Shown: one piece after another, positions 1 to 56,696 of the stretch
Numbering within the stretch: the stretch's first letter is position 1
How the letters are laid out: each line of letters begins with the position of its first letter
NCBI GenBank assembly: GCA_030704615.1
Contig: CM060732.1
Span: 82,398,001 to 82,462,000 of the forward strand
Length of the DNA stretch: 64,000 nucleotides
Direction of reading: 5' to 3'
Source of the DNA: Takakia lepidozioides
Taxonomy: Eukaryota > Plantae > Bryophyta
Notes under the pieces: generated by a model
Databases searched by the model: none
What the model was told of the DNA's origin: nothing
The model's input: the letters and a program-made list of their open reading frames with translations, nothing else
Made by a program: the position numbers and the translations under genes

Positions 1-571
1 TGCATTGGAAGCAGGCACTGAGCCTACTGGCGAAGATTTGTTCGTAAATTTTCACATGCATTGGTTCATACAAATTGGTTTATTGGTATCCACAAATATT
101 TTATACCATCACTAAAAATAAAATTGATATGTATAGCATTGCATATTTGACAAAGGAGTGGCATGCAACTATGGCCATTGGGGATATTGTTACACCTTAT
201 ATCCATATACAAGGAGCACATGCTGGACAGATTGCTGCTTTGTTGCATGTCGGTGTGACTATTGGCCGCATGAAGAACGAGGTGCTTGAGAGAAACACAG
301 AGAGATGAAAAACTTGCGTACAGCACAAGGGACCGGTCGAGGTGGTCCGGATGCTCATGTCCGACAGGTACAAAATGCAAGTTTATTTTCAGGTTGCATC
401 AGCTTTGTACTATACATATGATATAATGAATACGTAATTATAATTTTGTTGTGGTCATATATAAACTGCAGAGTGGGATCGTATGTGCTTTGACGCAAAG
501 ATGAGAACGTTATACATCAAGTTACACTTGATTCTGGATGATCTCATATCGGTGAGTACATATCATTTGCA

Positions 572-3500
572 CCCGGTTATCAGCGTCACGTCCGTCAGTC
601 AGCGTCAGATCACGTCAGACGCTGACGCTGACGGGACCTCCTTCACGTCAGGTTTCGGGAATATTCTAGTAAAAAAAGTATCAGGTAAAATATTGTCACT
701 TAAGCAGCCACGTCGCCGACACGGTGGCGGTGGCAAATACATTTTGAAAAATAATAAAATGAAAGCGACCGCCAATTATGGCGGTCGCTTTATATTTCAA
801 AAATTTAGAAATAAGAGCAACTGCCAATTCTGGCGGTCGCTTTATATTTCAGAATTTTAGAAATAAGAGCGACCGCCAACAAGGCGTTCGCTTAAAAAAT
901 ATTTATAAAAAAACAAAATTGGCGGTCGCCTAATTCTTAAAAAAGAAATAGCAACCTCCGTACTGGCGGTCGCATAATTTTAAGAATATATAAAAAACAA
1001 GCGACCGCCAGAATTGGCAATCGCTTGTTTTCAATAATATATAAAAAACAAGCAACCGCCATAATATGGCGGTCCCTTTATCTTACAAATATATTAAAAA
1101 AACTAGCAACCACCTTACTATGGCGGTAGCTTTATTTTAAAAATGTATTAAAAAAAACCAGCGACTGCCATAATATGGCGGTCGCTATATTTTAAATATA
1201 TTAAAAAAACCAGGCGGTCACTTTAATTTAAAAAAAAAACAAAACAAAACAAAACAGCGACTGCCATAATATGGTGGTCGCTTTTTTTTTTAAAAAATTA
1301 GAATATTTTAAAAATAACTATTTTAAACTTTTTTAAACTTTTTAAACAACTAAAAAATAATATTAATTTCAGAAAATGCAGCGGCCGCCAGTAATATCGG
1401 TCGCTGCATTTTATTCATTTATTCACTTCATTTATTCATTTTGTTTTTCTTTTTTTTTCTTCTTTTTTCTTCTTTTTATAAGGGATAAGGGGCCCTGAAA
1501 ATTTAAAATAGAGCGACCGCCAGTAATGACGATCGCTTTTATTTTTTATTTATTTAAATAGAGTGACCGCCATTATTGGTGGTCATTTTTTTAAAAACAA
1601 AATAAACCGGCCGCCATTATTGGCGGTCGCTTCTATATTTTTAATTTCTGAAAATACAGCGACCGCCAGTAATGGCGGTCGCATTTTTTTTTAAAACAAT
1701 AATAGAGCGACCACCATTATTGGCGGGCGCTTTTGTTTTTTATTTATTTTTAAATAGAGCGACGACCATTACTGGCGGTCGCTTGTATATTTTTAATTTC
1801 TGAAAATGTTGCGACCGCCTGTTTCGGTGATCACTTTTATTTTTCTTTTTTTAAAATAAAACGACCGTCAATACTAGTGGTCGCTTGTATATTTTTAATT
1901 TCTGAAAACATTGCGACGGCCAGTAATTGCGTTCGCTTTTATTTTTTTTGTTTTTTTAATTGAGTCATTACTGGCTTTTTTGTTGTTTTTTTAAAATGTA
2001 GCGACCGCTATGGTGGCGGTCGCTTCTAGAAGGTGTACCTTACGCGTGGACCGCGAAATGGGAGGGGTAGGGAGATAAGCAAAGGGAGATTTATTCTCCC
2101 CTCATTTCCTCTTCACACAACTTATGTGCGACCGCCATTATTGGCGGTCGCTTTTGTTTTTTATTTATTTTTAAATAGAGCGACGGCCTTTACTGGCGGT
2201 CGCTTGTATATTTTTAATTTCTGAAAATGGTGCAACCGTCGTTAATTGTTTAATTTTTTAAATAGAGCGACCGCCATTACTGGCGGTCGTTTTTTTGTTG
2301 TTTATTCTAAATGTAGCGACCGCCATAGGATGGTCGCTTCACTTTTTAGAAAAACTTAACAGAGCGACCGCCGTAATGGCGGTCGCATTATCTTTTAAAA
2401 AAACGAAAATAAAAGACAGCCATAAGGCGGTCGCTTCATTTTTTTTTCTAAACGATTTAAGGAAATTGAAAAAAAAAAACGTAAGCAAGCGACCGCCGAA
2501 TTGGCGGTCGCTTCAGTTTCTTGGAAAGTGAAGAAGAGCGACCGCCGTATGGCAGTTTTTTTTTGTTTTTTTTTAAAACTAAAATAAACAAATTTTATTT
2601 ATATTAAATTTACTTATTTTTTAATGTTTGTTTTGAAGGAGCGACTGCCATATTGGCGGTCGCCCTAGTTTTTTTAAAAGCGAAAAAGAGTGACCGCCAT
2701 CGGGCAGTGGCCTCATTTTTTAAAGAAATAATAAATTTTATTTTTAATTTTTTAATTTTTTTAATTTAAAGGATCGACCGCTGTATTTGCGGTCGCTTCA
2801 CTTTCTTAAAAAGCGGAGAAGAGCGACGGCGGTCGCTTCATTATTTTATTTTAAAAAAACTTATTTTAAAATTTAACTTTATTTTTTTATTTTTTTTAAA
2901 AAAAATAACAAAAACTAAACTAAATACCTTAAAGGAGCGACCGCCGTATTGGTGGTCGCTTCAGTTTTTTAAAAAGCGAAAAAGAGCGACCCCAATATGG
3001 CGGTCGCTTCATTTTTAAAATAAATAAACGAAAATGAGCGACCACCATAGTGGCGGTCGCTCCATTTTTTATTTTATTTTTTAAATAATGACCGCCGTAT
3101 TGGCGGTCGCTTCATTATTTTAAAAAACCAAAAAAGAGCAACCGCCGTATTGGCGGTTGCTTTATACATGTTTTTTTTTTTTTTAAAGACTGCCATAGTT
3201 GCAGTCGTTTCATTTAAATTTCTTTTTTTAAAAAACGACTGCCGCTAAATGGCGGCCGCTAAATTTAAAAAAACAAAACGAGCGACCGCCATTTGGCGGT
3301 CGCTGCATTTTGTTTTTAAAAATTAATGAAGCGACGGTTTGGCGGTCGCTTCATTTTAGAATCAAAATAAAAATATGCGACGGCCGGCGAATGGCGGTCG
3401 TTGTGTTTTTTAAGATATTCTTTAAACTACGAGCGACTGTCAATTTGGGCAGTCGCTTTATTTTTAAGACTAATAATTTTCAAGCAACCGCCCGTCGTTT

Positions 3501-3904
3501 AATTTAAAATATATTAAATTGCTAGCGACCGCCAATATGGGCAGTCGCTCCATTTAAAACTTCATAAATTGCCGGCAACCACCAATATAGGCGGTCGTTT
3601 AATTTAATAAAATATTAAATTACAAGCGACCGCCAATATGGGTGGTCGCTTGATTTAAAAAATAATAACTTTTAAGCGTCCGTATTTTTGGGCGGACGTA
3701 TTTTTTCAAATAAATTAATAAATTTTAATAATTGGTCACGTCTGTGTTACACCGTGGCTGCCATGTTATTAAAAAGGATAAAAATAAATCGTAAAAATCA
3801 AATATATTATTTTTTAAATTACTTGGGTAAACGTCCGGATTCGACGTGAAGTGACGTGACGGCTGACGTGTCCGGGCCACGTCACGTCAGGAATGATAAC
3901 TAGA
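572..3904. mobile_element. Non-autonomous TIR DNA transposon made of a hairpin-repeat array, inserted in an intron
   Basis: Perfect 8-bp TSD CATTTGCA at 564-571 and 3905-3912. Ends are CCCGGTTATCA and TGATAACTAGA, an 11-bp TIR with transition mismatches. TGACG/ACGT clusters lie next to both ends. Confidence 0.8.
760..3700. repeat. Array of roughly 45-50 palindromic GCGACCGCCA-N(2-8)-TGGCGGTCGC units separated by A/T-homopolymer-rich linkers
   Basis: Directly visible with about 55-65 bp periodicity. Short unique core at about 2030-2125. Copy number is an estimate. Confidence 0.95.
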
Positions 3905-4839
3905 CATTTGCATGTATATTCATTCCATCACAATAATGTTTGTAATTGTGAATATGTACTAATTGTATTTGCAAATGATTGTTGTAATACTTATTTGTTG
4001 TCAATTTAGTTATATACTACTATCTATGATCAATTCAATATTCTCATGTTGTGTATTTGAACCGTGTATTTATTCTAAATTTTCCTATAAGGTTTACAAG
4101 CAGCGGCGTTGGCATGGCCCTGCAATCCTTGCGGCTTTGATGAAGGAATTTACAGGGCGTCAACTATTGGTAAAAATGAGAGCACACCCTTGCAGATACA
4201 ACAGACATTTCGCAACTGGATATATCATAAACGTGCACAGGAACACGCCCCTTTGCAGGTAAATACCACTCCATGACTGTACATGTAATGGATATAATTG
4301 TAAGTTTGATTTTCAAATCTGTATGTTATTTGGATTTCTTGACATTCATTTCGGCATGTGTTACATATGTAGTGGAGGATGTTGGTGAGGTAAAGATCCT
4401 TGACAAGTGTAGCCCAGGAGGCTGAGGCTAACCGTCATGTGTTTTCTCGGTCGAAGAGGCGTGCGCAACCTCTTCCACCTCACGAAAGTATTGACCCTTT
4501 AGCCCCGATTACACATGCTATAGTTGTAGGTCGTGGAGGCCGTGTCAGCCGTGGAGGTCGTGGAAGTCGGGCACTACCTCTTCCACTTGACGAGAGTATT
4601 GATCTTTCAGGCCCCATTACACATACTACAGTTGCAGGTCGTGGAGATCGGGGCCGTAGAGGCCGTGGAGGTTGGGCACCGGCGAGACCACGGCCCTCAT
4701 TTACACATTCCATTATGGATTAGTTCACTACGAGCATATCGGATATACACCATTATATTCACATAGTGATGTATCTCTCATATATTGTGGGTGGTGATGT
4801 GTCAAATTATGTGTGTATATGTGTATTATGTGTGTACTT

Positions 4840-5690
4840 TGCACGAGCAAGTAACACCTACATTCATACGTCCTATAGTACCATATACCATAAAAGTCAT
4901 TGCACTCGTGAACTTACAAAACACGATCCATATTATTTTAGTTGAATTTGAAACTTTACATGAGCAACTAACACCTACATTCATAGGTCCTGCAACAATA
5001 TCATGAACAACAAAAATCGTTGCACCAGTGAACTTTAAAAACACCGTCCGTATGATTTTTGTTCGATTTGAAACTTTACTTGAGCAACTAACACCTACAT
5101 TCATAGGTCCTGCAACAATATCATGAACAACAAAAATGGTTACACCAGTGAACTTAGATAACACCATCCGTATGATTTTAGTTCGATTTGAAACTTTACA
5201 TGAGCAACTAACACCTACATTCATATATCTTGCAAAAGTATCATGAACAACAAAAATCATTACACCAATGAACTTAGATAACACCATCCGTATGATTTTA
5301 GTTCGATTTGAAACTTTACATGAGCAACTAACACTTACATTCTTATGTCCTGCAAAAGTATCATGAACAACAAAAATCGTTACACCAGTGAACTTAAGAA
5401 CAACATCCGTATGATTTAGTTGGATTTGAAACTTTACATGAGCAACTAACACCTTCATTCTTATGTCCTGCAAAAGTATCATGAACAACAAAAATCATTA
5501 CACCAGTGAACTTAGAGAACACCATCCGCATGATTTTAGTTGGATTTGAAACTGTACATGAGCAACTAACACCTACATCCCTATGTCTTGTAAAAATATC
5601 ATAAGCAACAAATTTTATTACATCGATCTATTTACAAAACTCCATCTGTATGATTTTAGTTGGGTGTGACACTTTGCACAAGCAATTACA
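4840..5690. repeat. 120-bp tandem repeat, about 7 copies
   Basis: GAGCAACTAACACCTACATTC recurs at about 4843, 4962, 5082, 5202, 5322, 5440 and 5559. It gives the 40-aa periodic ORF 4826-5491(-). Confidence 0.95.
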
Positions 5691-5799: not shown

Positions 5800-8603
5800 A
5801 TGAAAGTGATGTCTCATACGAAAGTCATGGCCTTACGAGTCTGCTCAAGCTCATCAATCTCCATAGTTGTGTACAGACCTGTGTATCGACCCAATCTGTG
5901 ATCCCATGTGAATCTATCTCATGTGAAAGACACCTGTAAATGTGGCCAACGGGCACTATGCCGATACTAACGAAAAGTCATAGTCGATGCTACTATCACT
6001 TAAGCAGGATGAGGGATCTCATCTGTAGGCTCCATGATGATGCGCTCTGGAAATGAACTCCAAAGATAGAAAATATGCTCACGCAACCGATCATACCCTC
6101 AAATGGTGATCTCAATGTAGTGGGGGTGGCGCACAGCTAGAGTCACAGCCAACAATGGACCGAAGACACTAACCCATGTATCACTATCACAAGGCACATC
6201 TACATACCCAAAAGATCGATAATGACCTCGAAAAATACACGCGCGTAAATCTGCAGATCCACCACTATCATAAATAAGATGAAACGCACATGAGGCTATG
6301 GGATGAGTAGAGAAAATGACAATGCACCAGCGGCAGCAGTGAACTCACGACTACTGGCCATACGTCTCACAATGGCCTCATCGAAACCCCTCTGTCGTAG
6401 GCGAGTCCAAGATGGAACTGGAGAGGTGGGAATGACAAAATACTCGCAAAAATATGTCAACTCAAATGGCACCCGACTAGACCACCTCTCATAACTGCGA
6501 CGTGTATAAAACATGTCCACAATACCAACAAGTTATACACACACGTGATTTCGAATCAGATGCATGCGTGAGTTATGTAAATAAAAAAATGCAACATGCA
6601 TCATTGCAGAACAAACTCTATTCAAGATTATACATATTTTTTACGCACGATCAATAACTATATACATATCATGCACGTCGTCCACATGACAGATAAATCC
6701 CTCGGTCGTGTAGTAGACCTCCGTTCGTTTCGATCGTCGAGCAGTTGGAGACAACGCCGAATCAATGGAGTCTGGCATTGTACAACCTCTATCTCTGAGA
6801 TCGCTCAAGGTCATAAATCGGCGACCACAAACGTAGGGAACACCAGCCTCATCCATCACACACTCTAAGACCTCAGTGATTCGCAACAACCCATCCATCG
6901 TGACTCCCACACCATCACGAACCACATACTGTACATATGAACCTGGATATAAATATGTCATCACCCCCTATACTGTAATCGCATGTGCGTCAACCCTAAG
7001 AAAGCGATGACCCTCAAAGTATGGAACCCCTCCCGCAACACACAACAACGGTGGAACGACATCGTGAGTGCCGCCTACGTAAGACGTCCGACGAGACCAC
7101 AATGCATGGGGCGCATCAATAGGGATACTCAACAACAATTGCTCCAACTCGTCATACTGAGGGGAAATGAGCATAAACCCTCCAAAGTCATCCGCATAAG
7201 CCATCCGTGTAGTGATAACAGCATGTGAAGGCTGCTCGTAGTAAACCCCCCCAACATAAAAATATGGACTGGCATGGCCACGATCCAATCCTAACAGCAA
7301 TAACGGATGAGGGGTGCTCACTGGCCAAGGAAGAACCTGGGCTAGCTGTACTCGCCTACGCATATCATCATCCATGACCAAAATCGTAACAATATGCTGC
7401 TCAGGAATGACCCCAATGCAAGAGCGAATATAACTATTAACCGTAAACGTATCGTCATGACAGTCCGCCTGTGATGGTTGACACGGATCTAGTATGGCTG
7501 CATGGATCAGAGGCTCCTCGTGTACTGGTGAATCAGGGCAATGATCCTCAGAAAATAGAGATGATAGTCCTCCATGCAAGTCTGTGAACGCGAATCTATC
7601 GTCCTCTAGGCTGCCTCTCGGTCAAAACCTCTCACTGTCTCTGTACCTCTCGAGTCTATATCTCAAGCTCATGTTTCTGTCTCTCGATATCCTGTCTCAA
7701 ACTCTGCAGCTCAGAACGCTCTCTCAGTATCTCCCGCCTATCTCTTTGCACATCGAGCCTGTCTCTCTCAACCTCTCGACTCTGTACAAGCAATCTTGGT
7801 TGAGACACAAGTAATCGCCTAATGCGATCTCCCTGAGTACCGGACGCAGAATTGGCTGGCACCTGACGTGTAGAATGAGGTGATGTAGGAATGACTCTCT
7901 GTGACGTGGAAACATTATGCATGATCGAACAATAAGCATCTGCTGTACGTGGGATGTCACGAGGTGGAAGACCTAAAATCAACCTCTGCTGAGGGGTAGA
8001 AATGGTGGCTACTCTCATACGACAACCATATGACTCTTCGCGATGGGCATCAACAACAGCCGTCACGATACCAGGCCTAATGTACTGATGTCGACGTGGT
8101 CTACTAACATCATGTATGCCCTCGTGAGCCACACGGACACTCAAAGGAGTGGGACTGTGCACGACTGAATGTACAGCTCGAGGTGCATAAGCAGCCGGAG
8201 ACGAAAGATCGGGCAAAAGTGCAGAATGCATAATACCCTCTTGTCGTTCTTGCTCATTCTCTCTCTCACGTATCACCCTGTCAACTTCTCTGTCCACCTG
8301 AGCTTGTCTATCACGAGATGCCCTATTTATTCCCTAAGCCTCTTCAATCAAACCATCAATCTTGTCTGGATCAGACAATGACAAAGCAAGTGAGTCAGAG
8401 CGGGATCCAGACTCTCGCTTGTGCCTCAAAGTCTCTTGTAATGCATGCAAATCCGCACGTGCCCTGCTAAAATCTCTCGAGGGACTAGATAGATCTGTTG
8501 CTTTACCTCTGTTTCCGAGTAAAGCACCATCACCCAGCAAGCTGTCGGCCAAGTTGCGAACAACCCGTTTCAGAGACTCTTGACCCTCCGCCATTTGAAT
8601 CAC
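5800..8603 (-). pseudogene. Decayed multi-ORF gene of unknown function, convergent with the transposase-like gene; probable TE accessory gene
   Basis: Colinear minus-strand ORFs 8334-8603, 7656-8297 (coiled-coil-like), 6968-7579, 6641-6964 and 6296-6520 with protein-like composition. Recurring GVPY motif. No family recognised. Confidence 0.45.
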
Positions 8604-11434: not shown

Positions 11435-14382
11435 TATATACAACTAAACAAGAAAATCAAATAGAGAGAAGAGGAAATGACCTTGACAAACACCTTTCGG
11501 TAAGCTATCCTTGTCGAAGTAAATCGATGATCTACAATTGAATCGTACGAGGCCAATCTAACTCCAAATCGCATCGACCGAGTTGGGGCTATTGTTTTGG
11601 GGCATAGTTGCACCATCTTGACAGGCGTTGAACAAAAAATGAAGTCGTCCCTAATATCCACTAATCACACTCCCAAGCTCTCTCAGACTAGACTAAACAA
11701 AAATTCTCTATCACACAAGCTGTCACCCCCATTCCAACTGAGACTCTCAAAATGTATTGGACTAGAATACAATACATCTCCAGCAAACATGAACAGACTG
11801 AGCAAAATTCCATATATCTATGCTGACATCGGAACGCATCCTCGTATTCGCCATGTAAAGGGGCACCGACATCTTCTGTCGTTAACGACATTTAATGACA
11901 CGTAAGGTTAATATAATAATATTAATTAAAATAAATGAGAATATCTCGATCTTTCGCGCCACAAAATCGTTTCAAATTGAAACCAATGTGGTGTATATGA
12001 TGATTGTCTTTCAAGTCTAATCTTTGGAAGCAAGAGCCACACGTCTATTATGTTCAGGATCATCGATATCCAAATTATATCATAGCAACTCTGCGAGAGA
12101 CATATCTCAAACTTTCGCATTGCGAAATCGCACGAAATTGAGACCATTGTACACGATAATCAGCTATCTTCCCAACTCGAGGTTCCATACAAAATGTCAC
12201 ATGTATACCCTAAGGCCTAGAGAGTCTACATTTGGGAGCTTTGACCACTACCAGACATCAAAATAACTAGAAACACAACTGGACAGTGGAAACCCAAGGC
12301 AACAGCTATCATGTTGAGGATCTGCAGCCTTGGAAAGAGATACGATGTGACTTTGATATTGATCCGTAAGATAATTTCGCAAAGTTGAGTCAAATTACTA
12401 CAACTCAGTTGATAATATTTGTGTGGTTTACATGATTACAGATTATGATTGCAACAACGACACATCTGTGAAATTTTGTTTGAGAAACTTTATACCTAGA
12501 GAGACTATTTGCCATTCGGCCATTTTCCAACACATTAAGCAAAAACGAGATTAAATTCCACATGTTAGGCAAGAACATTTTGAAGTTTTTTATAAATTGA
12601 CACTCATTACTCTCTTGATTCTGAAAGAATTTCCTCTTCTGCAATGCGAAAGAAAATAAGTGGTGCTATGAGCTCATTTTGAGTGGTGTTATAAGCTCTG
12701 TTCTCTCTGATGCTATAATTATTTGGCATGGAGAGGAGTCTCTCGGTTATTATAAATTGTCTTCAAATCTCCATTATTTTCATCCGGATTACAGATTAAA
12801 TGTTGTAACGGATGTTTTGGGATCCAAGCTATGTGGATATTTCAGCGTTTGACCTATATCCATATTATTCTTTCGCATTATGAAATTCAGATAGTGCAAT
12901 GCTTTATGACAGATAAATATATAATCCATAGCTTTGATTAAAGCATATTTAGAGTATTCAATTCATGCCCGTGGATGTAAATATACCCATTGATATTTCT
13001 GGATATTTTTGCTTTACGACATATATATTTAATAAAATACTCAATTTCCACGTTATTTTTGGGATCACGAATAAAAAAACCCTAAATTAGCACCCATATT
13101 CTGGACATGTTCAAGCAGATGTGGTCATTGTAGCTCAATTGGAGTGTCACTCGTAGGTCAATTAAAAAGGTCTGATCCTTCATAAGGGGGTGAAAGCAAG
13201 CTACAGTGTCCCAAAAAAGTCCCAAGGTAGCCTCCCAAGAAGTCCGAATAATCCTTGATTTAATAATTACAAAAAAGATATAGTCGTTGGATTCATCCAT
13301 GCCGAAAGATTTGAACCGTCTAAAGTTGACAATGTCAGACATTAGAGTGTTCAATTGTTTTTTTTTTAATAATTGTTTTTAGATTAATATCAGGAACGTC
13401 ATTGCAAGTATTTGTTTTTTTGTTTTTTTTTGTTTTTTTAGAGAACAGGGGCAATGTCCTCGTAGAACTTTATTAAGATTATTTTGGGGAAAAAAAATTA
13501 AAACCTGTCATACATCATAGAGATACACACACCGTGATCAGTGAAAGATGATCAATCCTCCTATCGGAATCAACAGAGTACAACTAGCCTCCGGAGTGGA
13601 CAGACAAAAACTTTGTCGTCAAGAAACCCTACTTGGGGTTTCAAACCCCGTAGGGGATTGAAGAGAACCATTATATTTTTTACCCTAGATATCGAGATGG
13701 CAGCCCAAGTGGACCCTGGATTTAATTTTTTTCATTAGTACATTAGGTGGGACCGCCAAGTTTTGACAGACGCTTCAATTTTTATTTTATTTTATTTCCT
13801 TGAAAATGGATACAGCCGCCAATTATGGCGATCGCATCTATTAAAAAAAAACATTACATGCGACCGCCAATTATGGCGGTCACATCCATTTAAAAAAAAA
13901 TTATATACAACTGTCAACGTCAGTGATCGTATCAATTTCCTGAAAATATGTGGAACCGCTAGGACTAGCGGTCGCATGTAATATATATATTTTTTAATAG
14001 GTGCGACCACCATATTTGACAGTCGCACCTATTTTCAGAAAAAATAAAATCCTAAAAATTGATGCACCCACCAAGATTGGCGTTCGAATGCAATTTTTTT
14101 ATTTTTTTTAATAGTTACGACCATCGAGTCTGGCAATTGCATATATTTTTTAATTGTTTTTAAAGGGACGACCCCTATAATTGGCGATCTCACCCATTTT
14201 CAGGAAACAAATAAAAAATAAAAATACTATAATTTTTTTGAGAAAAAATGATGCGACTGCCAATGTAGATTAATGTATATAATCTTTTATTTTCTAAACA
14301 GTAACCTAGAAGAGCCCAAAAGAACGAGACACAACCTAGGTATAAATACCAAATGATCAATGGAAATAATCTTAGACATCAT

Positions 14383-18420: not shown

Positions 18421-19789
18421 GCAGTACACATGTACAAGTCAGCATTGAAACATAGTCGGTGCAGACTATTAAACAGCATAGGTGTAACCGTCGATTATGA
18501 CGATCACATGTAATTTTTTAGTTTTTATAATACGTACTACCATCAATTATGGCGGTTGCATGTAGCTCTATATTTTTATAAAAAACATGTGACCGCCGAG
18601 GCCGATGACCGCATATAATCTTTTATTTTTTAATAGGCGTGAACGCCCAAGGCTGACGATCATATATAATTAAATTAAAAAAATAAAAAATAAAAAATAA
18701 CATACAACCGTATTTTTAAATAAAATAAAAAATTACATGCGACTGCTTTAATTGGCTGTCGTACCTATTTTTTTTAAAATTAAAAAATATGCGACCGTCA
18801 GCCTTGGCGATCGTATCAATTTTAAGAAATATTATTTTCATTTTTTTCCTAAAAGAATGAAAACTTACATTCGACTATCTGCATTTGCGGATGCATCAGT
18901 TTTTAAGAATTTTTTTTTCTTGAAAATTGTAGCATGTAATTTTCATTTTTTTACTTTCTAGTAATCCTTCACGTTGTATTGCACAGAACAGTCGATATCA
19001 TCTTAAAAACGATGAGATTGACAGTGTTGTCACTGCCCACACAACATTCATACCTAGCAAGTGGGTGGTCCGTTACTGACAGATGAATTGAATCGAGAAA
19101 AGGTATATCTGGAGAGCATTGGGCATCCTGACATATCAAAGCAAAAAAAAAAAAAAAAAACGAAGACTTACACCACTTCATGAGGACATCAAAGATTCAC
19201 TGGATGATGAAACGATGGAAGAACCAATTCTTGGTCTTATCAAGCTTGAGGGTGCTCACACTTTAAACCCTTTTATTATTATCATTACCGTAGGTGGAAT
19301 TCCAGGTTTGGTTCTTCCAGATCCATTAAAATTCTTTTGTAATTTTGCGAAAGGTTTAATCAGCCAAATGAAGAAGCTCATCAAACAAAAGGTTAGAACA
19401 TCAACACTCATTTTGAGAATTTTGGTCCACGAGGATATAAACAAGCGTGACCGATTTGTTTTCCAAACGCATCCGAGGTTGGCGTTGACTTATGAGCTTT
19501 TGGATATTGCTCTTACAATCGCAAAAATGAAAAATTTGTCAATGAATAATACGATTTTAGTATGATGCACAACATGTTGACAGTTCTAAGTATAACTTGG
19601 ATTCTGAGCTCAATGACTTAAGAATATGTTTGAATACAAAAAATTTATGTGACAGATTGGTGAAGATCAACAGAGCTATTCAGTTTTGCAAGGCAAACCG
19701 TCGTCGCACAATCCACCACTTTACTCTCCATCACAATGAAGCATTTATCTAGCTTTAGTGTTGTGGCGTCTTCAACAAATCACCTACTT

Positions 19790-21810
19790 GCCGTCAGATC
19801 ATATTCCGGTGGTCTAAAATTTTATAAAATTATTTTCAAAAAAGATTTGGGATTGATAGATGTAACGATCAAATTTTTTGTAAAATTATTAATAAATTGG
19901 GACCGTCAAAATTAGCGGTATCGAATTTTTAATAAAACTATTTAATAAATCGAGACTGTCAGCTTAAGAGGTCTCGATTTTTAAAAATTATTTAATAAAT
20001 TTGGGATCGTAAGCTTTTAACTGTACTTATTTTTATAAATTATTTGATAAATTTGGGACCATCAGCTTTGGTAGTCCCGATTTTTGAAAAAACAATTCAT
20101 GTAAATCACGTCTGTATGACCCATTTAAAAAAGTACATATAGTTTTGGTGGTCTACATTTTATTTTTTAATCGAATAAAATCAGGACCACCAGCTTTGGC
20201 AGTCATGATTTTATTTTTTTAATCGAATAAAATTAGGACCGCCAGCTTTGGCAGTCCTGATTTTAATTTCTAATCAAATAAAATCAGGACCGCCAGCTTT
20301 GGCAATCCCGATTTTCTTTTAAGTGTATTTTTCTGGATAAAATCGAGACTGCCAACTCTGGTGGTCCCGATTCTGGTTTTTTTTTAATATTTAAAAAAAA
20401 CTTATTATGTGCGGCAGCTTTGGCGGTCCCAATTTTAAAACCAAAAAATTAAAAATAATATAAAAATGAGGACTGTCAGCTCTAGTATCTGATTTAATTT
20501 AGAAATTTAAAAAAAAAATGACTGTGAGCTTTGATGGTTCTGATTTTAATTTCAAAAATAAAAATATGATATCGACGGTTTGGGTGATTTTTATTTTAAA
20601 TTAAGAAATTTTAATAAAAATTGTGACCGCTAGTGCTAGCGGTCCCAAAGTCTAAAGCTGATAGATTATCACAGCTAACATAATTTTTTTGTTTGTTTGT
20701 TTATGTCATGTAGTTAATTTATTATTATTTTTTAAGCTCATACGTCTTTTTTTACTCTTCTGTATTTATTTATTTTTATATAAAATAAATCACCGTAGGT
20801 CTGCGTCACGTCAGTTAAGAACTGGATATATTGAGTATATGAGAAAGGTAGTAGCCTTCTCTTATCATACTTCTGGAATTGAAACTCATTTTTATCAGTA
20901 TTTAATACAGTGACCTGGATCTAAACTCAGCCTGATGAAAAATAGAATGAGAATGGAAGCTCTGGGAGCTTCAATTAACCTTTAATTTGTGAAACCCAAG
21001 GTCTAATTGGAGTCTAGGGTGGAATACAACAAACCATGTGTTCCTACGGTTGAGACGAGGGAAGTTTCATGTCAACCACATTGAGTGGATAAATCTACCA
21101 TGGGATTTTTGATGTTTCTATCTGCACAAGGATTAAGGAGCAATATAACATCACTAGTATTTAGCCCACAGATATTATCAATGTATCGAAAAACATATTT
21201 GAACCTAAACATCAGCTGGAACTGCCCAAGAGATGCAAATCTTAAAATGAATCTGAGCTCATATGATATGAAATAGATGTTACACCATAGTGATGAACAT
21301 GAGAAGCCCATATGAATACCTGAGATTTGTTGTCATACTCGGTCTCCCAGAACAACATAACAATGGGACATCAGCCACTTATGGAGCTTAAGCAGTTTTG
21401 CTTCAGAAAGCTTGATCCAAGTTCCAGTTTTTGGGGGAGAAAGACTTCACCCGCATTTCTTGAAGGTTCCATTTCTGGCTTGAATCCATAGTGCGTGATG
21501 GGACCGAGGATGAGGTGGTATTGAAGGCAATCTTTGCCAGAGCTGACGGCCCCAATTTTATCCGATTATATCTGATTTTTTCCGATTTCATGCTTTTTAA
21601 AAATCGGGACCGCTTGAGCTTGCGATCAGCATTTATTAATTATTTTATTGATAACCGGGGACCGATACGGCTGGCGATCTCGATTTTTTAAAATTCGAGA
21701 CCGCCAGAGCTGGTGTTTTCAAAAAAAAAATATAAAAAAATTCGGACCATTATAACTGACTGTCCTAAAAGTTTTGGAAAATTTTGGACTGCCGGATATG
21801 ACATGGCGGC
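19790..21810. mobile_element. Non-autonomous TIR element with GGGACCGCCAGC/TTGGCGGTCCC hairpin arrays
   Basis: Imperfect inverted ends of about 33 bp (GCCGTCAGATCATATTCCGGTGGTCTAAAATTT vs AAATTTTGGACTGCCGGATATGACATGGCGGC). Hairpin arrays at 19850-20650 and 21530-21780. No TSD identified. Confidence 0.6.
21000..21400 (-). pseudogene. Penelope-like retroelement reverse-transcriptase fragment
   Basis: QQISGIHMGFSCSSLWCNIYFISYE ... FKYVFRYIDNI corresponds to the PLE RT motifs GxxMGxxxSP..N.Y...E and RYIDD (second Asp mutated). Confidence 0.7.
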
Positions 21811-31727: not shown

Positions 31728-34700
31728 TACAACAACCCTGGGTTTTGACAGGAATCACTTTGAACAATCCTTTTACAGTTCAGGTCTTGATGGAACCATG
31801 ATCACAAGATCTCCACAGTCCTTTTGTAAAAAAAGTGAACCATAGTCCCTGTCCTACAAAAGCCAGTGACTATTTCTAGATTAACCAACTCTAATATGCA
31901 CAGCATCGGTTATCACATCCGGTCCACCCAGCCACCACGCCGTGCCTATCTCCTGCATCAGTTCTATCATATCATAGTGTCCTCCAGGCCACCGTCCTCA
32001 ATCCTCTTCTCCTCTCTTCGTGTCTGCCAGAACCGCCGCTCTTTCTTCGTGTACAGGTGACCTTCACCACCTATTGACCTCTTTGGCAGGTGATCAGTAC
32101 TCAAAGTTGGTAGTTGTCTCTCCAAACCTTCACGTGACACTGCTCCAGCTTTCCCCCACCTGTCATTCACACCACCCCATGGCCTTTTCCACCCAGAAGT
32201 CATTCAGAGTTGTTATCTAGAGGGCCATAACAAACTCCCCCACTAAAGATTCATCATTGTCCGCAATGATAGTGAAATGGGGAAAATCCAATTGCAGGTC
32301 ACTCTCTTTTTCCCACGTAGCTTCAGATTCTGGATAGTGATACCACTTGACAAAATGTTCACGATATGAACGATTTTGAAGGTGTTTCATTCTTGTCTCC
32401 AGAATAGATTCAAGTTCAGCTAATCACTGAACTTCATTCATAACTTTGGGTAGTTCGAGTAGAATATGACTGGGGTCTGCCACATATTTCCTTAGGAGGC
32501 TGACATGAAAGACGTCATGGATTTTCCAAGTAGCTGGCAGATCTAGCTGGTATGCCACAGATCCATAACACTGTAAGATCACAAAAGGTCCACAAAATTT
32601 TGGGGACAGCTTAGGACACTTGCCCAATTTCAATTGGCTTGAACTTCGTGTCCCTGTCACAAATGATCTCACAAGGTATCCCGTGGATCCGAAAGATTTC
32701 TTTCATGAACAGTGAAGCCATCTCAGGGGCAGTGACTGTCATTTTTGTGGGAATCAAGTGTGTTGTTTTAGACAATCTATCAGCAACCACCATGATGCTA
32801 TTATGTCCATTTCTGGTCCGTGGCAGTGCCACTATAAAATCCATACTTATCGATTCCCAGTTTCCACCGGGAACACTTAGTGGTTGTAATAATCCAGGAG
32901 GACGTATCCTTTCTGATTTTGAGACTTGACATGGGAAGCATCTATCCACATACTCTTTGATCTGTCTCTTCATTCCTGGCCAGAAATATTGTTTTCTAAC
33001 GGCCACATAGGTTCTTTGAAAGCCCGGATGTCCAGCTATTGGAATATTATGACAGTCATAAATGATACGCAATCACAAATCCTGTAAAGAAGGAATGCAC
33101 ATACGCATGTGATAATATAATATCCCATCATGCAACAAGTATGGTCAGTACTTGTCAATCTCAATAGAGGTCCGACGGTCATGCAAGAGGCTTTCATATG
33201 GTGCTTTTGAAAAACACATCATCAACATAATGATTCTTCACATCATCAATCATAGAGCTTTTCACAAGCGACACAGCATTGACCATCGGCCGTCTAGAGA
33301 GTGCATCTGCCAGTACATTCTCTTTTCCCTTCACATACCGCAGATCATAATGAAACTGCTGAAGGAATTCAACCCATCGAATCTGACGACGACTCAAATT
33401 GGGTTGTGTACTGAGATATTTTAAACTCTCATGATCCGTTTCAATTGTAAAGTCCACAAGAAGCAAGTAGTGCCTCCATATCTTCAGTGCGTGAATCATA
33501 GCCAAAAGTTCTTTTTCATGAACATGATAATTCTGTTCAGCTGGACTAAGCTTTCTGGACTCATAGGCAATGACCTGACCACTTTGCATCAATACTGCTC
33601 CAATAGCGAGGTCACTTGCATCAATACTGCTCCAATAGCGAGGTCACTTGCATCAATGCAAAGCACTATCTCATTCTTGGTAGGATCAATTAGCTTCAAG
33701 ATTGGAGCATGAGTCAATGCAAACTTTAGCTTGTCAAAGCTAATATCACAATCTGGAGTCCAAGCTTTATTTCAATATTTAGAAGTAGAGTTCTTTAGTA
33801 GATCAGTCATCGGGGCTGCAATGCGAGAGAATGATTTGACAAACTTTTGCAGAAAGCTAGCACACCCAACAAAGCTTCTGACTTCTGTTTTATCTTTGGG
33901 TTTGGGCCATTCGACCACAGCCTGAATCTTCTTTGAATCAATGGACACTCCATCCTTTGAGATATGAAATCCCAAATAGTCCATATGCTACAAAGAACTC
34001 ACATTACTCTTCTTTGCAAACAGATGATTCTGCCTTAAGATATCCAAGACCATTCTCAAATGTTGTTCATGTTCTTCTTCTGTTTTAGAAAATATCAGGA
34101 TGTCATCCATGAATACAAGAACCATCTTGCCAAGGTATTTTCGAAACAGAGAGTTCATCAAGTGCATGAACGTAGCCGGAGCATTGGTAAGTCCAAATGG
34201 CATCACCGTATATTCATAATGGCCAAAGCGTGATCGGAATCCAGTCTTAGGAATATTTGCATCTTTAATTCATATCTGGTGGTAACCTGATCGCAGATCA
34301 AGTTTGGAAAAGACCTTACTCGCATATAGGTGATCAAAGATATCATCAATGCGTGGAAGTGGATATTTATTCTTGATTGTCATTTTGTTCATCCACCTAT
34401 AGTCCACACATAGTCTTAACCCACCATCTTTTTTCTTTCTGAACATGACTGGAGCGCCCCAAGGGGATTTGCTAGCCCGAATATACCCCTTCTCAAGTAA
34501 GTCACTCAATTGTTTTTCAAGTTCTTCAGTTTTTGCAATTGAGTGCCGATAGGGTGCTCGCACAAATGGTATTGAATCAGCCACCAACTCGATGGCATGA
34601 TCAATATCACGTACAGGAGGCATTAATCCAGGAATTTCCTCGGGAAACATATCCCGATAATCATTCAGAATTGCTTTTGTTCTGACATGTACTCCTGCAC

Positions 34701-36608
34701 TTTTAGTACCTGATCCAGACAGACTTTCATGCACATTCAGGGCAAAAATCTGACCATTTCCCTTACGCGCACACTTTTTCATCTGAACAGCAGACATCAG
34801 AGGAACATTGGGGAGGGCTCGAGTACCTTTTAATTCAAAGGTTTTGCCAGAGGGTAAGGTACCGCTCACCAACCCACGCTTGCAAGCCACCACCGCATCC
34901 ACAATGTCAAGCCATTGCATCCCCAGAATGCAGTCGTAGCAAGCGCCGTTCCAGATTTCAAAATTTGCATTCGTGTGCACCTCTTGCATGACAACTGGCA
35001 CAGCTGAAAGATGTTGTTGTGTGGTCTCCACCCCACCATTTGGTAGCATAATCTGAGATGGCTGCACCTCCTCCTGAGATAATCCCAACTTGTCTGCAAA
35101 GGACTTTGATAGCATGTTGTGGGTGCTGCCAGTGTCAATCAACAACATTGTTGGTTTCCCCGCCACCTGTCCCTGAACTCGAATAACATTGAGGTTGTAG
35201 GCCACTCCACCATCGACAACTGTAGCTGACACTCTCATATTGGGACCCTTTCCAGTGGCCGATCCTAAACAATTTCCGAGGTCTGTAATGGTTACGGGCT
35301 CCACCGGTTCTTCCACTACCAAGGCTGCAGTCTGTCGGAATTGCCGTTCAAGACAATTTGCTGACCGATGGCCGGGCTTATGACAATTGAAACAGAGCCC
35401 CTTCCTAAGATGTTCTTCTTGTTCCCTGGGACTTAGGCGCGGTGGATTTCCAACAGTTGGTTTCTGTCGTCCCTGATTGTCTTTGTTCTTGTAGGGTTTG
35501 AACCTCTTCCAATTTCCCTTCCTTGATGGGGTGATCTTGGGAGAAAATGTCATCGTCTTCTCATTTTCCCCTGCACGAGCCGAGTATGCCACTCATTGTG
35601 CCTTGATTTCACATTCAAAATTGCAAGCCAATCTATAGGCTTCAACCTCAGTGCGGGGATTGTGGGCTTTGACCTTATATTTCAAAGAGTCATTTAGGCC
35701 ATCCACAAAAAAATCCACCCTGTCATCTTCACTGAGAGTTGGAAAATAGCTCGCATGCATTTCGAATTTGGTCTTGAACTCAACCACATTAGAACTTTCA
35801 TGTTTCAGGGTGAAGAGTTCAACCTTCATCTTATGAGCGTAATCTCCAGGGAGATAGTGGGCCAGAAACACTGATCGAAACTTCTCCCAAGTATCAATTG
35901 GGGGTTTGCCATGTTCACGGAGTTCTTTTTTCTGACGAGACCACCACAATTTTGCTGCATCCCGAAGTTGTAGGGTTGCCGTTCTAATTTTTGCTTCTTC
36001 AGGGTAATCCTCTTCAAATAATCCTCAAGTGTTTCTAGGAACGACAAAATCTCTTCAGGCTTGACAGAAGTCTTACCCACAAATTCCAACAGCTTCACCA
36101 TTCGTTTGATCTCGCGAGTTACATCTTTGTTTCTCTTAGCTCTGAACTCCAAGGAGCTAGCGTCAGATTGTGATTCGGCCTGGCTTCGCAATTCGTCATG
36201 TGAAGTCCCTATGGTTCTTTTCGCACTCGATTTCTCTTTTGCAGATTGAAGTTTCTGGACTTCAGATCGAATGAGTGAACCTAGGGCTTCCATCTGTGCA
36301 TTAGAGAAAAGCTCACCCTAGCGATCTTCCTTATGCCGAGAGCTATGAGCATCTGAAGGTTCCATCTCTTCTGAGTTATCGTACGAGCTGTGCCGCACGT
36401 TACTCTCCGATCCTGGCAACGAGAGCTTGCTCATAAATCCAAACGTTCCTTTTTCTGCCCTTATCGTACACAGGCTCTGATACCACTTACAACAACCCTG
36501 GGTTTTGACAGGAATCACTCTGAACAATCCTTTTACAATTCAGGTCTTGATGGAACCATAATCACAAGATCTACACAGTCCTTTTGTAAAAAAAGTGAAC
36601 CATAGTCT
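31728..36608 (-). mobile_element. Chromoviral Ty3/gypsy LTR retrotransposon, degenerate; 5' LTR broken by a rearrangement
   Basis: 3' LTR 31728-32232 follows the PPT (TAGTGGGGGAG). 5' LTR remnant 36488-36608 is nearly identical to 31728-31848. tRNA-iMet PBS TGGTATCAGAGC at 36474-36485. Confidence 0.92.
32250..36430 (-). pseudogene. gag-pol: gag-pol of the Ty3/gypsy element (gag, CCHC, protease, RT, RNase H, internally deleted integrase, chromodomain)
   Basis: [63 protein letters not shown]...CFPCQ, SMDFI, KFCGPF, and the chromodomain-like HFVKWYHYPESEATWE. Multiple stops and frameshifts. Confidence 0.92.
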
Positions 36609-38064: not shown

Positions 38065-41000
38065 AGTCTGCCTTCATCCACTAGGCCCCCATGGCTACAT
38101 GCTTGGAGAACACTTATAAAGGTGATACTATCTAGCTTGAAGCCTTCCTTTTGCATACCTTTAAATAGTTGCAGGGCTTCCCTACGACAACCATGCTGGG
38201 CATACAATTCTAGCTTTCTTGACATCAGCATGGACCTGTTTGCCTTTTTCCAGGGCTGCCAGGTTTGCACATGCATTATAGATGTAACCGAACATGACCT
38301 GGTTGGGCTTCACCCCTTCCCGCATCATCTGCTCATAGGTCTCCAAAGCCTCTATCCCAAACCCATGTTGGACATATCCTGCGATCATCGCACTCCATGA
38401 CACCACATTTCGTTCAGCCATTTTGTCAAAGACTCCCTTTGCATATTTGATGCTCCCGCATTTGGCATACATGTCTACGAGGGCAGTATCCAGAATGACA
38501 TATGGTACAATTCCGGCGTTCATGATGTCAGCATGGAACTCTTTGCCCTTTTCTAGGGCTGCCAGGCTCGCACAAGCATTGCAAAGACAAACAAACATGA
38601 CATGGTCAGGCTTCACCCCTTCCCGCATCTTTTGCTCATAGGTCCCCAAAGCCTCCATCCCACACCCATGTTGGGCATATCCTGTGATCATCGCATTCCA
38701 CGACACCACATCTCGTTCAGCCATGTTGTCAAATACTCTCTTTGCAACCTTCATGCTCCCGCATTTCGCATACATGTCAATAAGGCTATTGTTCAAAATC
38801 CGATTTGGTACAAGTCCAGCTTTCATGATGTCAGCATGGACCTCTTTGCCCTTTTCCAGGGCTGCCAGTCTCGCACAAGCCTTGAGTATGCAAACAAATG
38901 TGACCTGATTGGGCATCACCCCTTGCTGTATCAGTTGATCATATGTCTCAAAGGCATTCCTACCACAACCATGCTTGGTATATCCTGCCACCATATTGTT
39001 GAACACTAGACAGGCCTCCCCTACACTCCCATATTTGGCATACATGTTAACAAGGGCAGTCTCCCAATTAATATATGACAAAATTCCAGCTTTGATAATG
39101 TCAGCATGGATATCTTTGCCCTTCTCCAGGGCCACCATGCTGGCACCAACATTGAGAACACAAATGAATGTGGCTTGCACACGCATTACAAATGCACACA
39201 AACGTGATGTGGTCGGGCTTCCCCCCTTCGCCCATCATGGACCTCTTTGCCCTTTTCCAAGGCTGCCAGGCTTGCACGAGCATTGCAAACGCTCACAATC
39301 GTGATGTGGTTGCATTTCATCCCTTCCCCCATCATTTGCTCATAGGTCTGATCCAAGGCCTCCATCCCGCGCCCCTGCTGTGCATATCCTGCAAGCATGG
39401 CGTTCCATGACACCAAATCTCGTTCAGCCATATTGTTGAACACTCCCTCCGCATCCTCAATGCTCCCACATTTGGCATACATGTCCACGAGGGTATTGTT
39501 CAGAATCACATCTGGTACAATTCCAGCTTTGGCGATGCAACCATGCACCTCTTTGCCCTTTTCCAGGGCTACCAGGCTTGCACACGCACTGCAAACGCAC
39601 ACAAACGTGATGTGGTCGGGCTTCACCCCTTCCCCATTTGCTCATAGGTCTCCAAAGCCTTCATCCCACGCCCCTGTTGTGCATACCCCTGCAAGCATTG
39701 CGTTCCACGACACCACATCTCGTTCAGCCATAGTGTTGAAATTAACTCCCCTTTGCATCCTTAAAGCACCCACATTTGGCATACATGTCCACCAGGGCAG
39801 TGTTCAGGATGACATCTGGTACAATCCCAACTTTGATGATGTCACCATGGACCTCCACAGTTCCCAAACTTGCACACGCGTTGCAAATGCAAACAAACGT
39901 CATGTGGTTGGGCTTCACCCCCTTCGCACATCATTTGCTCATAGGTCTCCAAAGCCTCCATCCCGCGCCCTTGCTATGCACATCCTGCAATCATCGCACT
40001 CCATGACACCACATCACGTTCAGCCATACTGTCGAACACTCCCTTCGTACATGTCCACGAGGGTATTGTTCAGAATGACATTTGGTACAACTGCAGCTCC
40101 GACAATGTCGCCATGGACCTCTTTGCCCTTTTCCAGAGCTGCCAGGCTTGCACACGCACTGCAAATGCACAGAAACATGATGTGGTCGGGCTTCACCCCT
40201 TCCCTCATCATTTGATCATAGGTCTCCAAAGCCTCCATACCATGTCCCTGTTGTGGATACCCTGCAAGCATTGTGTTCCATGACACCACATCTCGTTCAG
40301 CCATAGTGTTGAAAACTCCCTTCGCATCCTTCATGCGCCCACATCTGGCATATATGTCCACCAGGGCAGTGTTCAGAATGACATCTGTTACAATTCCAGC
40401 TTTGACGATGTCACCATGAACCTCTTTCCCCTTTTCCAAAGCTCCCAGGCTTGCACACGCATTGCAAACACAAACAAATGTGATGTGGTTGGACTTCACC
40501 CCTTTGCGCAATATTTGCTCATAGGTCTCCAAAACATTCCTACCACAACCATGCTTGGTAAATCTTGCCCACATTATATTTCAAGTGATCAAAGATCGTC
40601 TGTTGAACACTTGGTGAGCATCCATGATGCTCCCGCACTTAACATACATGTTGACAAGGGTGTTGAGGAGCAAAATATTTTGCGTGAATCCACTTTAGAT
40701 AATGTGAGTGTGCATCTGTTTTCCAGCTTCCAGACTTTCCACCTTGATGCATTTAAGCAAGAGACAGACATACGTATCTGAAATGTCTCTTTGGTTTAAA
40801 GTTTGTAGAGCCTCTGTCAGTCTGCCTGCCGCACAAAGCATCTTTATATGCCCAAAAGTGCCAGAAGAGGCATTGTGGACTCCCTCTCTTGATCCTCTTT
40901 CAGAAGCTGTGGTCATGGTTGAGGTGCCTGATTTTATCAACTGTGCCGCTGCAGCTGCTGCCTTTAGTTGACCATCTACCCATGCAGGTTTCTTGTAGCT

Positions 41001-43020: not shown

Positions 43021-43690
43021 GAAGGTGGTAAGTTAGTAGTCGGTCTCTGGTAAGAGAGAAGGTGGGAGACTGACAGCGTGGGGGCATCATGTGGGCCGCC
43101 AGTCAAGCTCCAGCGAGCCCTGCAATTATATGGCCGCTTACCTACACGTTCCTGTCTGCTTTTTTGTCGACCCTTTGCATCTCTCATAACCCACAAATCA
43201 CAAGACTGTTTTTCTTTGATTATCTTTTGCTTCTGTCATAACTCACAAATCAGAAGACTGTTTTTCTTTGATATTGTTTTGCTTCTGTGACAAGTCAGAA
43301 GACTATATTTACATAACTGTGTTCAAGTGTAATCAAGGGCCACCATCCTTCTTCCAGGAACAAGGAACAGAAGATTGGTTGGGAGCAAACAGCAAACATG
43401 TGAAAGTGGTTGTATGATGAAGTGGGAGAATTGAGAAAAAGAAGGGAGGGTGGTAAGAGGGGGGAGATTGAGTGAGGGCAGGGCCATCTATGAAAAATAA
43501 TGGCAGTGTCCTTTTGGCACCTACAACAAATGGGGGGTGCTCCAGCTGGAATGTGTGTCTGACGCTATCAGTGCTCGTCTCTCCCGCGCCTGCTAAGCTC
43601 TGGCTGAGGCTGGTAGGCTCGTGGGGAGAGATCGGAAGGAGTTCTGGAGTCCAATGCAGGATGCGCACCACGGGGGTGCGCGAAAGGGGA

Positions 43691-45028
43691 ATGGCTTGGG
43701 CGATTGCGCGGGTAGCTGCTGGTGTGTGGGTGGTGATGGTGGCTGTAGTTGTAGCTGGAGCAGCAGAGGGGGTGGCAGGGAGGAGAGATGGTTTGGGGGG
43801 TGGTAAAGGCTTGAGCTTTGTTGAGGGGAAGGTAGGTGGTAGGGAGCTTCTTAGTGAAACCGATTTGCAAGGGGAGAAATCCGGTAGCGGGCTTGGTAGT
43901 GGGTCTATTCTTTTCGCGCTGCTCGATTCGCAGTACTCGGAGCTGGTTGTGTTGCTAGATAAGGCGTCGTTACTTGAGTCGCTGGAGAAGCAGGTGAGCC
44001 ACGGAAATGTCACGATTTTTGCTCCTAGGAACACGTTTTTGGAGCAGCATTTGGATGCAGACTTTCGAACGTTCCTGCTTCAGCCTGGCAATGTCAAGGC
44101 TCTGCAACAGGTCCTGGACTTCCATGTGCTGCCCATGCGCCTAGAGGCCGGCGACTGGAGCAATAGGACTGTGAAGACTCTTGCAGGTGAGAACATCAGC
44201 TTGCGCTCTTTTGGACTCAAGCGCTATGTCGACTTCTCTCGTGTGATTTCGCCAAACTCCATCGTTCGCCCTGATGGGATTGTCCATGGCTTGCAAGGAT
44301 TGCTGATTCCAAAGGGAGTCTCTTTCCTTTACGAAGGCTGGAAGAGGGGGGACAAGTTTGCGGTGTTACCTGCCAGCTCCCCTCCAGGATCTCGGTACTA
44401 CTACCCCCCATCTCCGTCGATATTCTATGGACCAGATGGCTCCGCTCCTGCTCCTGCGCCCTCTGCTCCTGCGCCCGGCCCTGCACTTGCTCCCGCCCCT
44501 GGGCCTTCTCAGGAGGTTTTCAACTGGAATGAGGAGGAAGAAGTTCTGCATTTCATTAACTCACTTGTGAACTACGGTGGGTATAATGAAATGGCTGATC
44601 TACTTGTCAACTTCACATCACTAGCTCCAGAGCTTGGAAAGCTCGTGAAGGAGGGCTACCGCTTGACGATTCTCGCGCCCAACGATCAGGCCATGTCACG
44701 GTTGACTTTCGAACAACTCAATTCGCCGCTGGAGCCCATCATTTTCTATCACGTTCTCACAGAGTATCAAACGGAGGAAAGTCTCTACAACACTGTCCGA
44801 AGGTTTGGAAAGACAACCTACAGCACACTGCATGTACCTCTCAAATTGACTGCAATGGAGGCAGATGGGACGGTGCAATTTGGGGAGGGGGAGAACTCAG
44901 CACAAATATATGATCATGACATCTACACTGACGGTCATGTTTCCGTCCAGGGAATTAGTAAAGTACTTAGCATACCATCCGCAACAGCATCTACAACAGA
45001 GAAAGACACTACTACAGAGGTGCCATAG
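43691..45028 (+). CDS. Fasciclin-like arabinogalactan protein, group B (FLA15-18-like; two FAS1 domains around an AP/PA-rich AGP module)
   Basis: Single ORF (track 43472-45028). Signal-peptide-like MAWAIARVAAGVWVVMVAVVVAGAAEG from 43691. Motifs VTIFAPRN, VRPDGIVHG, APAPAPSAPAPGPALAPAPGP, YGGYNEMADLLVN, EYQTEESLYN.VRRFGK and DIYTDG.VSVQGI. Start codon is inferred. Confidence 0.93.
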   Translation: MAWAIARVAAGVWVVMVAVVVAGAAEGVAGRRDGLGGGKGLSFVEGKVGGRELLSETDLQGEKSGSGLGSGSILFALLDSQYSELVVLLDKASLLESLEKQVSHGNVTIFAPRNTFLEQHLDADFRTFLLQPGNVKALQQVLDFHVLPMRLEAGDWSNRTVKTLAGENISLRSFGLKRYVDFSRVISPNSIVRPDGIVHGLQGLLIPKGVSFLYEGWKRGDKFAVLPASSPPGSRYYYPPSPSIFYGPDGSAPAPAPSAPAPGPALAPAPGPSQEVFNWNEEEEVLHFINSLVNYGGYNEMADLLVNFTSLAPELGKLVKEGYRLTILAPNDQAMSRLTFEQLNSPLEPIIFYHVLTEYQTEESLYNTVRRFGKTTYSTLHVPLKLTAMEADGTVQFGEGENSAQIYDHDIYTDGHVSVQGISKVLSIPSATASTTEKDTTTEVP

Positions 45029-56400: not shown

Positions 56401-56696
56401 TGGTCCACATTTCCTGATGCTAATGGTTGTCCATCGATGACTTCAACGGGGGCCGAGAGTTTCTTCTTTACGAGCATTAAATTGTGTTGTTTCGCAAAGT
56501 TTTTGTCCATAAAACAAGCTGAAGCTCTTGAGTCCAAAAGTGCTTCTATAGTCATATCTCGATTTTGCACTCTGATTTTTACCGGAACTGTGAAGCAAGG
56601 TGCAGGGTCTGGAGGTAGAAAGAGACATTTTTTCGGTAAGGAATTTGTGGAGTCCAGCCGCATGGTCCTTACTGTGACTGGACATCTTCGTTTGCC
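53500..56696 (-). pseudogene. pol: pol (protease, RT, RNase H, integrase, chromodomain) of the Tcn1-like element, disrupted
   Basis: [42 protein letters not shown]...[32 protein letters not shown]...[10 protein letters not shown]. Deletions in RNase H and integrase. Confidence 0.92.

Follow-up and report, generated by a model that had tools for sequence, protein, structure and literature searches.

The window analysed here comprises 64,000 nucleotides of contig CM060732.1 of Takakia lepidozioides (Bryophyta; assembly GCA_030704615.1, positions 82,398,001 to 82,462,000). Its first part contains a transposase gene on the forward strand, which is truncated by the window start, interrupted by a nested element and faced tail-to-tail by a partner gene on the opposite strand (Table 1). 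The region 1–4723 (+) likely corresponds to the 3' half of a transposase gene that contains introns and has decayed; its catalytic exons, further upstream, are located outside the window. A preliminary description had already placed the diagnostic peptides in a spliced gene. This context was corroborated by a GT donor and by further exons, but the gene had been drawn too narrowly, as it reaches 4723.

Elsewhere in the window, ORFs for Ty3/gypsy-type protease and reverse transcriptase (34270–35592 (−), 55164–56663 (−) and 61742–62539 (+)), a PPR gene (38182–39201 (−)) and a fasciclin-domain gene (43472–45028 (+)) were identified, all of which represent ordinary plant genome content. A search of the window against Rfam yielded no match, and no second copy of the transposase gene or of the ends of the nested element was detected within the window.

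Table 1 Features of the transposase gene, the nested element and the facing partner gene
Feature	Position	Strand	Evidence
Exon a (probable), cut by window start, ..ALEAGTEPTGEDLF	2–42	+	Open frame to GTAAAT donor at 43
Exon b	137–367	+	Motif of the preliminary description; homologues P0001–P0006; protein and DNA alignments
One-base deletion (frameshift)	294–296	+	Lys codon between ER and HRE; DNA alignment
Lost splice acceptor	463–464	+	AA versus AG in three homologues; DNA alignment
Exon c, TAEWDRMCFDAKMRTLYIKLHLILDDLIS	465–554	+	GT donor at 555; tblastx matches to L001, L007 and L010; DNA alignment
Nested non-autonomous element, 3.3 kb, in intron	572–3904		8-bp direct repeat; comparison with L007
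Exon d, ..IQQTFRNWIYHKRAQEHAPLQ, boundaries approximate	4091–4258	+	tblastx match of 4169–4225 to L007 2256–2312
Last exon, ..AQEAEANRHVFSRSKRR.., Arg-Gly-rich tail, 5' boundary approximate	4412–4723	+	Stop at 4721–4723
Tandem repeat of 120 bp (7 copies) separating transposase and partner gene	4836–5675		Tandem Repeats Finder
Partner-gene exon, tail-to-tail with transposase	5877–6062	−	Similarity to L001 8852–9037 (−)
ORFs of 107, 203 and 213 residues, possibly upstream partner-gene exons	6641–8297	−	ORF listing

Exon b and its frameshift

The preliminary description had pointed out three peptides, all of which were recovered at the indicated place, i.e. within exon b: TPYIHIQGAH containing a His-x4-His pair, IGRMKNEVLER containing the proposed catalytic Glu region and, following a change of reading frame, KHREMKNLRTAQGTGRGGP (HREMK..TGRGG). 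The exon reads IAYLTKEWHATMAIGDIVTPYIHIQGAHAGQIAALLHVGVTIGRMKNEVLER, with frame 0 of 138–305 giving IAYLTKEWHATMAIGDIVTPYIHIQGAHAGQIAALLHVGVTIGRMKNEVLERNTER up to an in-frame stop. The other frame continues as KHREMKNLRTAQGTGRGGPDAHVRQ, with frame 2 (296–367) reading HREMKNLRTAQGTGRGGPDAHVRQ and the GT donor following directly at 368.

DNA alignment with the homologous loci L007, L001, L010 and L014 revealed one base to be absent from the window copy only (GAG AGA AA- CAC, at about 294–296). The corresponding stretch KNEV(V/L)ERKH(R/Q)E.KN... is encoded in a single frame in all four intact homologues, which originate from four other organisms; likewise, P0001 and P0006 read NEVVERKH(Q/R)E.KNL.T..GAGRGGP in one frame. 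Since the intact homologues read through, a single base has been deleted from the copy in the window, and the frameshift postulated beforehand is genuine.

A 56-residue piece of exon b was compared by phmmer with 1.84 billion representative proteins. Six exon-sized fragments of 47–108 residues were retrieved (E 2.5e-5 to 2.7e-4), none of which carries a functional name, the JGI entries being annotated solely as 'hypothetical protein'. One long repetitive protein was also retrieved and was taken for a chance match. Comparison of the window with the fragment-bearing contigs by tblastx yielded linked matches across three successive exons. As judged from these sequences, the match of the exon b motif goes beyond chance.

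Further exons of the transposase gene

The open frame at the very start of the window (exon a) is probably an upstream exon: joining it to position 137 would preserve the frame of exon b. This short piece has no homologue match. Downstream of exon b, the next AG after the lost acceptor is located at 470–471, and its use would shift exon c out of frame. Homologous exons follow the 3.3-kb block, and the region around exon d bears IQQTFRNWIYHKRAQ. The motif of this exon (IYQLFRNWAYKAKRA / IYQLWRNWYLRSQ) also occurs in ORFs of L007 and L002. The last exon resembles, by eye, the final ORFs of L002 (AMEAEERRQAFRRMPKR) and L007 (ALEVEEARQRFRRMPER), both of which are terminated by a stop codon.

The copy in the window is dead. 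It cannot work because of the one-base deletion, the lost acceptor, the transposon in its intron and the stop codons in the facing gene.

Nested element and facing partner gene

The 3.3-kb block is flanked by the 8-bp direct repeat CATTTGCA (564–571 and 3905–3912). It harbours the palindrome GCGACCGCC-N-GGCGGTCGC 39 times at a spacing of about 50 bp and terminates in CCCGGTTATCA and, reverse-complemented, TCTAGTTATCA, which constitute short imperfect inverted ends with CACGTCA-rich subtermini. In L007, only about 100 bases separate the ORFs with the two exons corresponding to the flanks of the block. Because the block possesses its own 8-bp repeat and the homologous exons resume beyond it, it represents a foreign, non-autonomous transposon residing in an intron; on the same grounds, the palindrome array was rejected as a subterminal region of the transposase element itself. 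The 8-bp duplication suggests a hAT-type insertion. Smaller clusters of the GCGACCGCC-N-GGCGGTCGC palindrome were observed at 13750–14260, 18739–18814 and 20345–20646 of the window, which identifies it as part of a repeat family that is dispersed.

The exon of the facing partner gene shares 43.5 % identity over 62 residues with its minus-strand counterpart in L001, which is likewise located downstream of the homologous transposase gene. In the window, this exon contains three in-frame stops. Neither the partner gene nor the minus-strand ORFs yielded a Pfam match or a PDB sequence match. The copies of the 120-bp tandem repeat located between the two genes are 87 % identical to each other, and the repeat gives rise to a spurious minus-strand ORF of 221 residues.

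Homologous loci and the ECHH clade

All sequence searches were run exon by exon. The homologous loci comprise one locus represented by L001–L005 as well as L007, L010 and L014, which together provide the four intact versions of exon b. Upstream exons of these homologues encode FKLAID with the first Asp, ECHD with the second and, about 20 residues after ECHD, FCPWC. Hence, two upstream Asp residues and a CxxC, which the preliminary description had proposed to look for, are present in the homologues, with the window holding none of the respective exons. The E-x2-E motif is retained in all four intact copies of the transposon clade, and spliceosomal introns are conserved in the transposase gene of several organisms. 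A search of metagenome contigs for relatives returned L009 as sole locus; it has only the queried GFRVDSIQAW pattern in common, looks unrelated and was dropped.

A second clade is represented by the orthologous, syntenic loci L006 (5258–10700) and L008 (4989–10950) from two related organisms, which share about 87 % DNA identity and the same DNAJC11-like neighbour gene. In all nine proteins of this clade ECHD is replaced by ECHH. Furthermore, L006 seems to be devoid of E-x2-E, a reading that hangs on an unconfirmed splice junction. Judging from these sequence features, the clade probably consists of domesticated relatives of the transposase in which catalysis is altered and apparently lost.

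Predicted fold of the family core

Structure prediction was performed with P0014, a member of the domesticated ECHH clade rather than a transposon copy, covering the core without the C-terminal His/Glu region. This clade is useful for folding, since a single exon holds 292 contiguous conserved residues. An initial AlphaFold model based on an alignment of 11 rows was discarded (pLDDT 41.7). Prediction from a 25-row alignment that also took in exon fragments from transposon-clade members resulted in a model of middling confidence, with a pTM of 0.57 and residues 80–226 at a pLDDT of about 60–89. In this model the first Asp (D144) is located within strand 136–148, and the position of the second Asp (228) directly follows the fourth core strand (217–226). 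This predicted placement would correspond to that in RNase H-fold transposases.

Comparison of the model with the PDB by Foldseek yielded HzTransib or RAG1 for all of the ten best matches, with weak E-values of 0.0045 and up. VIA-align returned Z-scores of 9.1–7.6 for 34 entries of HzTransib, RAG1 and BbRAGL (rmsd 2.7–4.4 over 119–163 residues), followed at a distance by the P element transposase (Z 3.9) and by ISCth4 and Hermes (Z about 3). The structural comparison with RAG1 and HzTransib recommended at the outset thus turned out positive, both being the top PDB matches of the homologue core. The structures compared were HzTransib (6pqy, 6pqr, 6pqx and 6pqn), mouse RAG1 (6cik, 6oep and 4wwx) and BbRAGL (6b40). 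Several of the VIA-align alignments end at RAG1 residues 708–711, beside D708, the second catalytic Asp of RAG1. Altogether, the core model of the homologue displays a RAG1-type pre-RNase H and RNase H fold with Asp residues on strands 1 and 4, and a RAG1-type fold of the family is well supported by this prediction.

We know of no PDB structure for CACTA, Chapaev, Mirage or Lanisha, and the PDB ranking can therefore not separate these groups from each other. Among predicted structures, unnamed Mucoromycota clusters matched the P0014 model best (TM 0.51 and 0.48). Transposase_21 (CACTA) clusters of arthropods and plants reached TM 0.42–0.49, those of Streptophyta 0.48–0.49. According to ESM Atlas features, the core is nearest to RAG1 clusters (0.96), along with an unnamed cnidarian cluster. 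The homologue P0001 of exon b has unnamed clusters of Porifera, Mucoromycota and Nematoda as neighbours (0.92–0.95); the named families nearest to this exon are the CACTA family DUF4218 (0.79) and RAG1_ZnH2 (0.77), which are effectively tied and both below match level.

Sequence searches at family level did not link the transposase to a named group. At E-values up to 10, the window pieces, the homologue exons and 11 family members had no relevant Pfam match, including none to Transposase_21, DUF4218 or Transpos_assoc. The same pieces also had no match at E up to 10 to RAG1 families in the Pfam copy used, which may not hold the newest RAG1 models. When PDB sequences were queried with the profiles A1, A3 and A4 as well as with individual pieces, no RAG1 or Transib chain was retrieved and the matches were due to chance only.

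Affiliation of the transposase family

The combination of a CxxC and His-pair zinc motif with a subsequent Glu is common to the entire CACTA-Mirage-Chapaev-Transib (CMCT) clade, members of which have 5'-CA..TG-3' ends and TSDs of 2–5 bp (PMC12730594). Within this clade, Lanisha is listed as a cut-and-paste superfamily beside Transib and RAG1, the motifs given for it being C(2)C and H(3-4)H; the published tree contains Lanisha-cDNA-1_DrEr, Lanisha-1_RhIr and Lanisha-2_StPi, located with weak support between Transib and Chapaev (PMC12730594). The superfamily was described by Carey et al. in 2021 from the moss Ceratodon purpureus, where its share amounts to 1 % on the autosomes but 5.8 % on the V chromosome; the deposited element is MT647524 (PMC8245031).

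Taken as a whole, the evidence places the present family in the wider CMCT clade and not in Transib, and the family probably constitutes a RAG1-fold transposase of this clade other than ordinary CACTA. The preliminary description had proposed a Transib/RAG1/Chapaev-related transposon. Of this proposal, the relatedness is upheld by the RAG1 fold of the homologue core and by its proximity to RAG1 clusters, but membership in Transib/RAG1 is not, considering the missing sequence-profile match and the TM values of 0.42–0.49 obtained with CACTA models. Within the clade, the family is best assigned, with reasonable confidence, to the Lanisha superfamily, as distinct from Transib proper and from ordinary CACTA. 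This assignment is circumstantial, Lanisha having been compared by description only. The features given for Lanisha are found here: FCPWC and H-x4-H are present, the fold is of CMCT type and no EnSpm Pfam match was obtained. For Lanisha, a moss host is reported, and the gene content of the window (PPR, fasciclin and Ty3-type genes) is plant-type. The nearest unnamed Atlas clusters of core and exon, from Mucoromycota, Cnidaria and Porifera, fit in as well: two of the listed Lanisha families would have a fungal and a coral host, provided that the labels RhIr and StPi denote Rhizophagus and Stylophora, as we presume. Introns, partner gene, ends and TSD of Lanisha are not described in PMC8245031 or PMC12730594.

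The idea put forward earlier that such a group was undescribed in land plants and might form a new lineage does not hold, with Lanisha already named from a moss (PMC8245031) and assigned to the same clade (PMC12730594). Nothing points to a horizontal acquisition, which had also been considered; the spliceosomal introns are conserved in several organisms. The window copy is genuine, but probably not a new kind of element.

Genuine membership in the Transib/RAG1 lineage, as a newcomer to land plants separate from Lanisha, appears unlikely. It would agree with HzTransib and RAG1 being the best matches among solved structures and with the language model setting the core nearest to RAG1. In sequence, both have a CxxC some 20 residues beyond the second Asp, then His-x4-His and Glu, motifs that belong to the whole CMCT clade. 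The x4 spacing of the His pair is as in RAG1, and the mouse RAG1 segments NYFHKTLAH and EGNESGNKLF presumably line up with YFH...AH and E-x2-E-x5-F, in agreement with the residue-level match to mouse RAG1, IG included, drawn in the preliminary description. However, the PDB ranking is blind to CACTA, Chapaev, Mirage and Lanisha, and predicted CACTA models match about equally well. Identity in the superpositions with Transib/RAG1 amounts to only 10–18 %, and neither RAG1 Pfam families nor Transib/RAG1 sequences of the PDB were matched, profiles included. In contrast to Transib/RAG1, the family studied here has many spliceosomal introns and a facing partner gene devoid of Pfam and PDB sequence matches. 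Moreover, a moss superfamily with such motifs has already been named.

A very divergent CACTA/EnSpm transposase is even less probable, despite the abundance of these elements in plants. The En-Spm TnpD type (Transposase_21, DUF4218) has the clade-level fold and the order D, D, CxxC, His pair and E in common with the present family, Streptophyta Transposase_21 clusters come close by shape and, among named families, DUF4218 lies nearest to the exon. Against this stand the complete lack of Transposase_21, DUF4218 and Transpos_assoc matches at E up to 10 for any piece or any of the 11 members, and the best shape matches, which are to unnamed Mucoromycota clusters. In addition, the His residues are spaced by x4 instead of x3 and a WMYPFER-type motif is missing, the two differences from plant CACTA transposases named in the preliminary description.

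It is highly improbable that the window contains, instead of a transposon copy, the decayed duplicate of a host gene that was domesticated (L006/L008 type). A conserved relative with a fixed genomic position and altered catalysis does exist, and the window exon is 58–60 % identical to the exon of this clade. Yet the window retains the E-x2-E that is apparently absent from L006, its exon has no intron after KN, as in the transposon clade, and its best exon match is L010, a member of the transposon clade. The facing partner gene is present as well, as it is downstream of the L001 copy.

Assignment to Lanisha remains the preferred reading. If it holds, the locus adds one more dead copy to a superfamily that already has a name, and by itself has few implications. 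The family as such is barely characterised, with protein databases holding only exon-sized fragments that lack names and a Pfam family. Its fold links plants to the transposon clade which gave rise to RAG1, and transposon classification would gain a piece that it truly lacks if the ends, the partner gene and the domesticated relative were properly described. It is unlikely that the family differs from Lanisha as deposited and forms a branch of its own, rich in introns and with two genes, next to Transib/RAG1. Were this true, the family of the RAG1 ancestor would reach land plants, with an unrelated partner gene and a domesticated, catalytically dead offshoot.

Putative roles of the conserved motifs

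According to its position in the order of motifs, exon b would encode the region following the zinc-binding CxxC, and its His-x4-His pair would bind a structural zinc jointly with the upstream CxxC. The first Glu of KNEV(V/L)ER may provide the third carboxylate of a D-D-E cut-and-paste site, as suggested by the motif order and the conservation of E-x2-E. The family is also presumed to be mobile.

By eye, the stretch located after the CxxC in the homologues (V..H...DT..S......M....L..V) may resemble a LysM-like motif, for example in L007 26–289 and P0011 residues 415–456.
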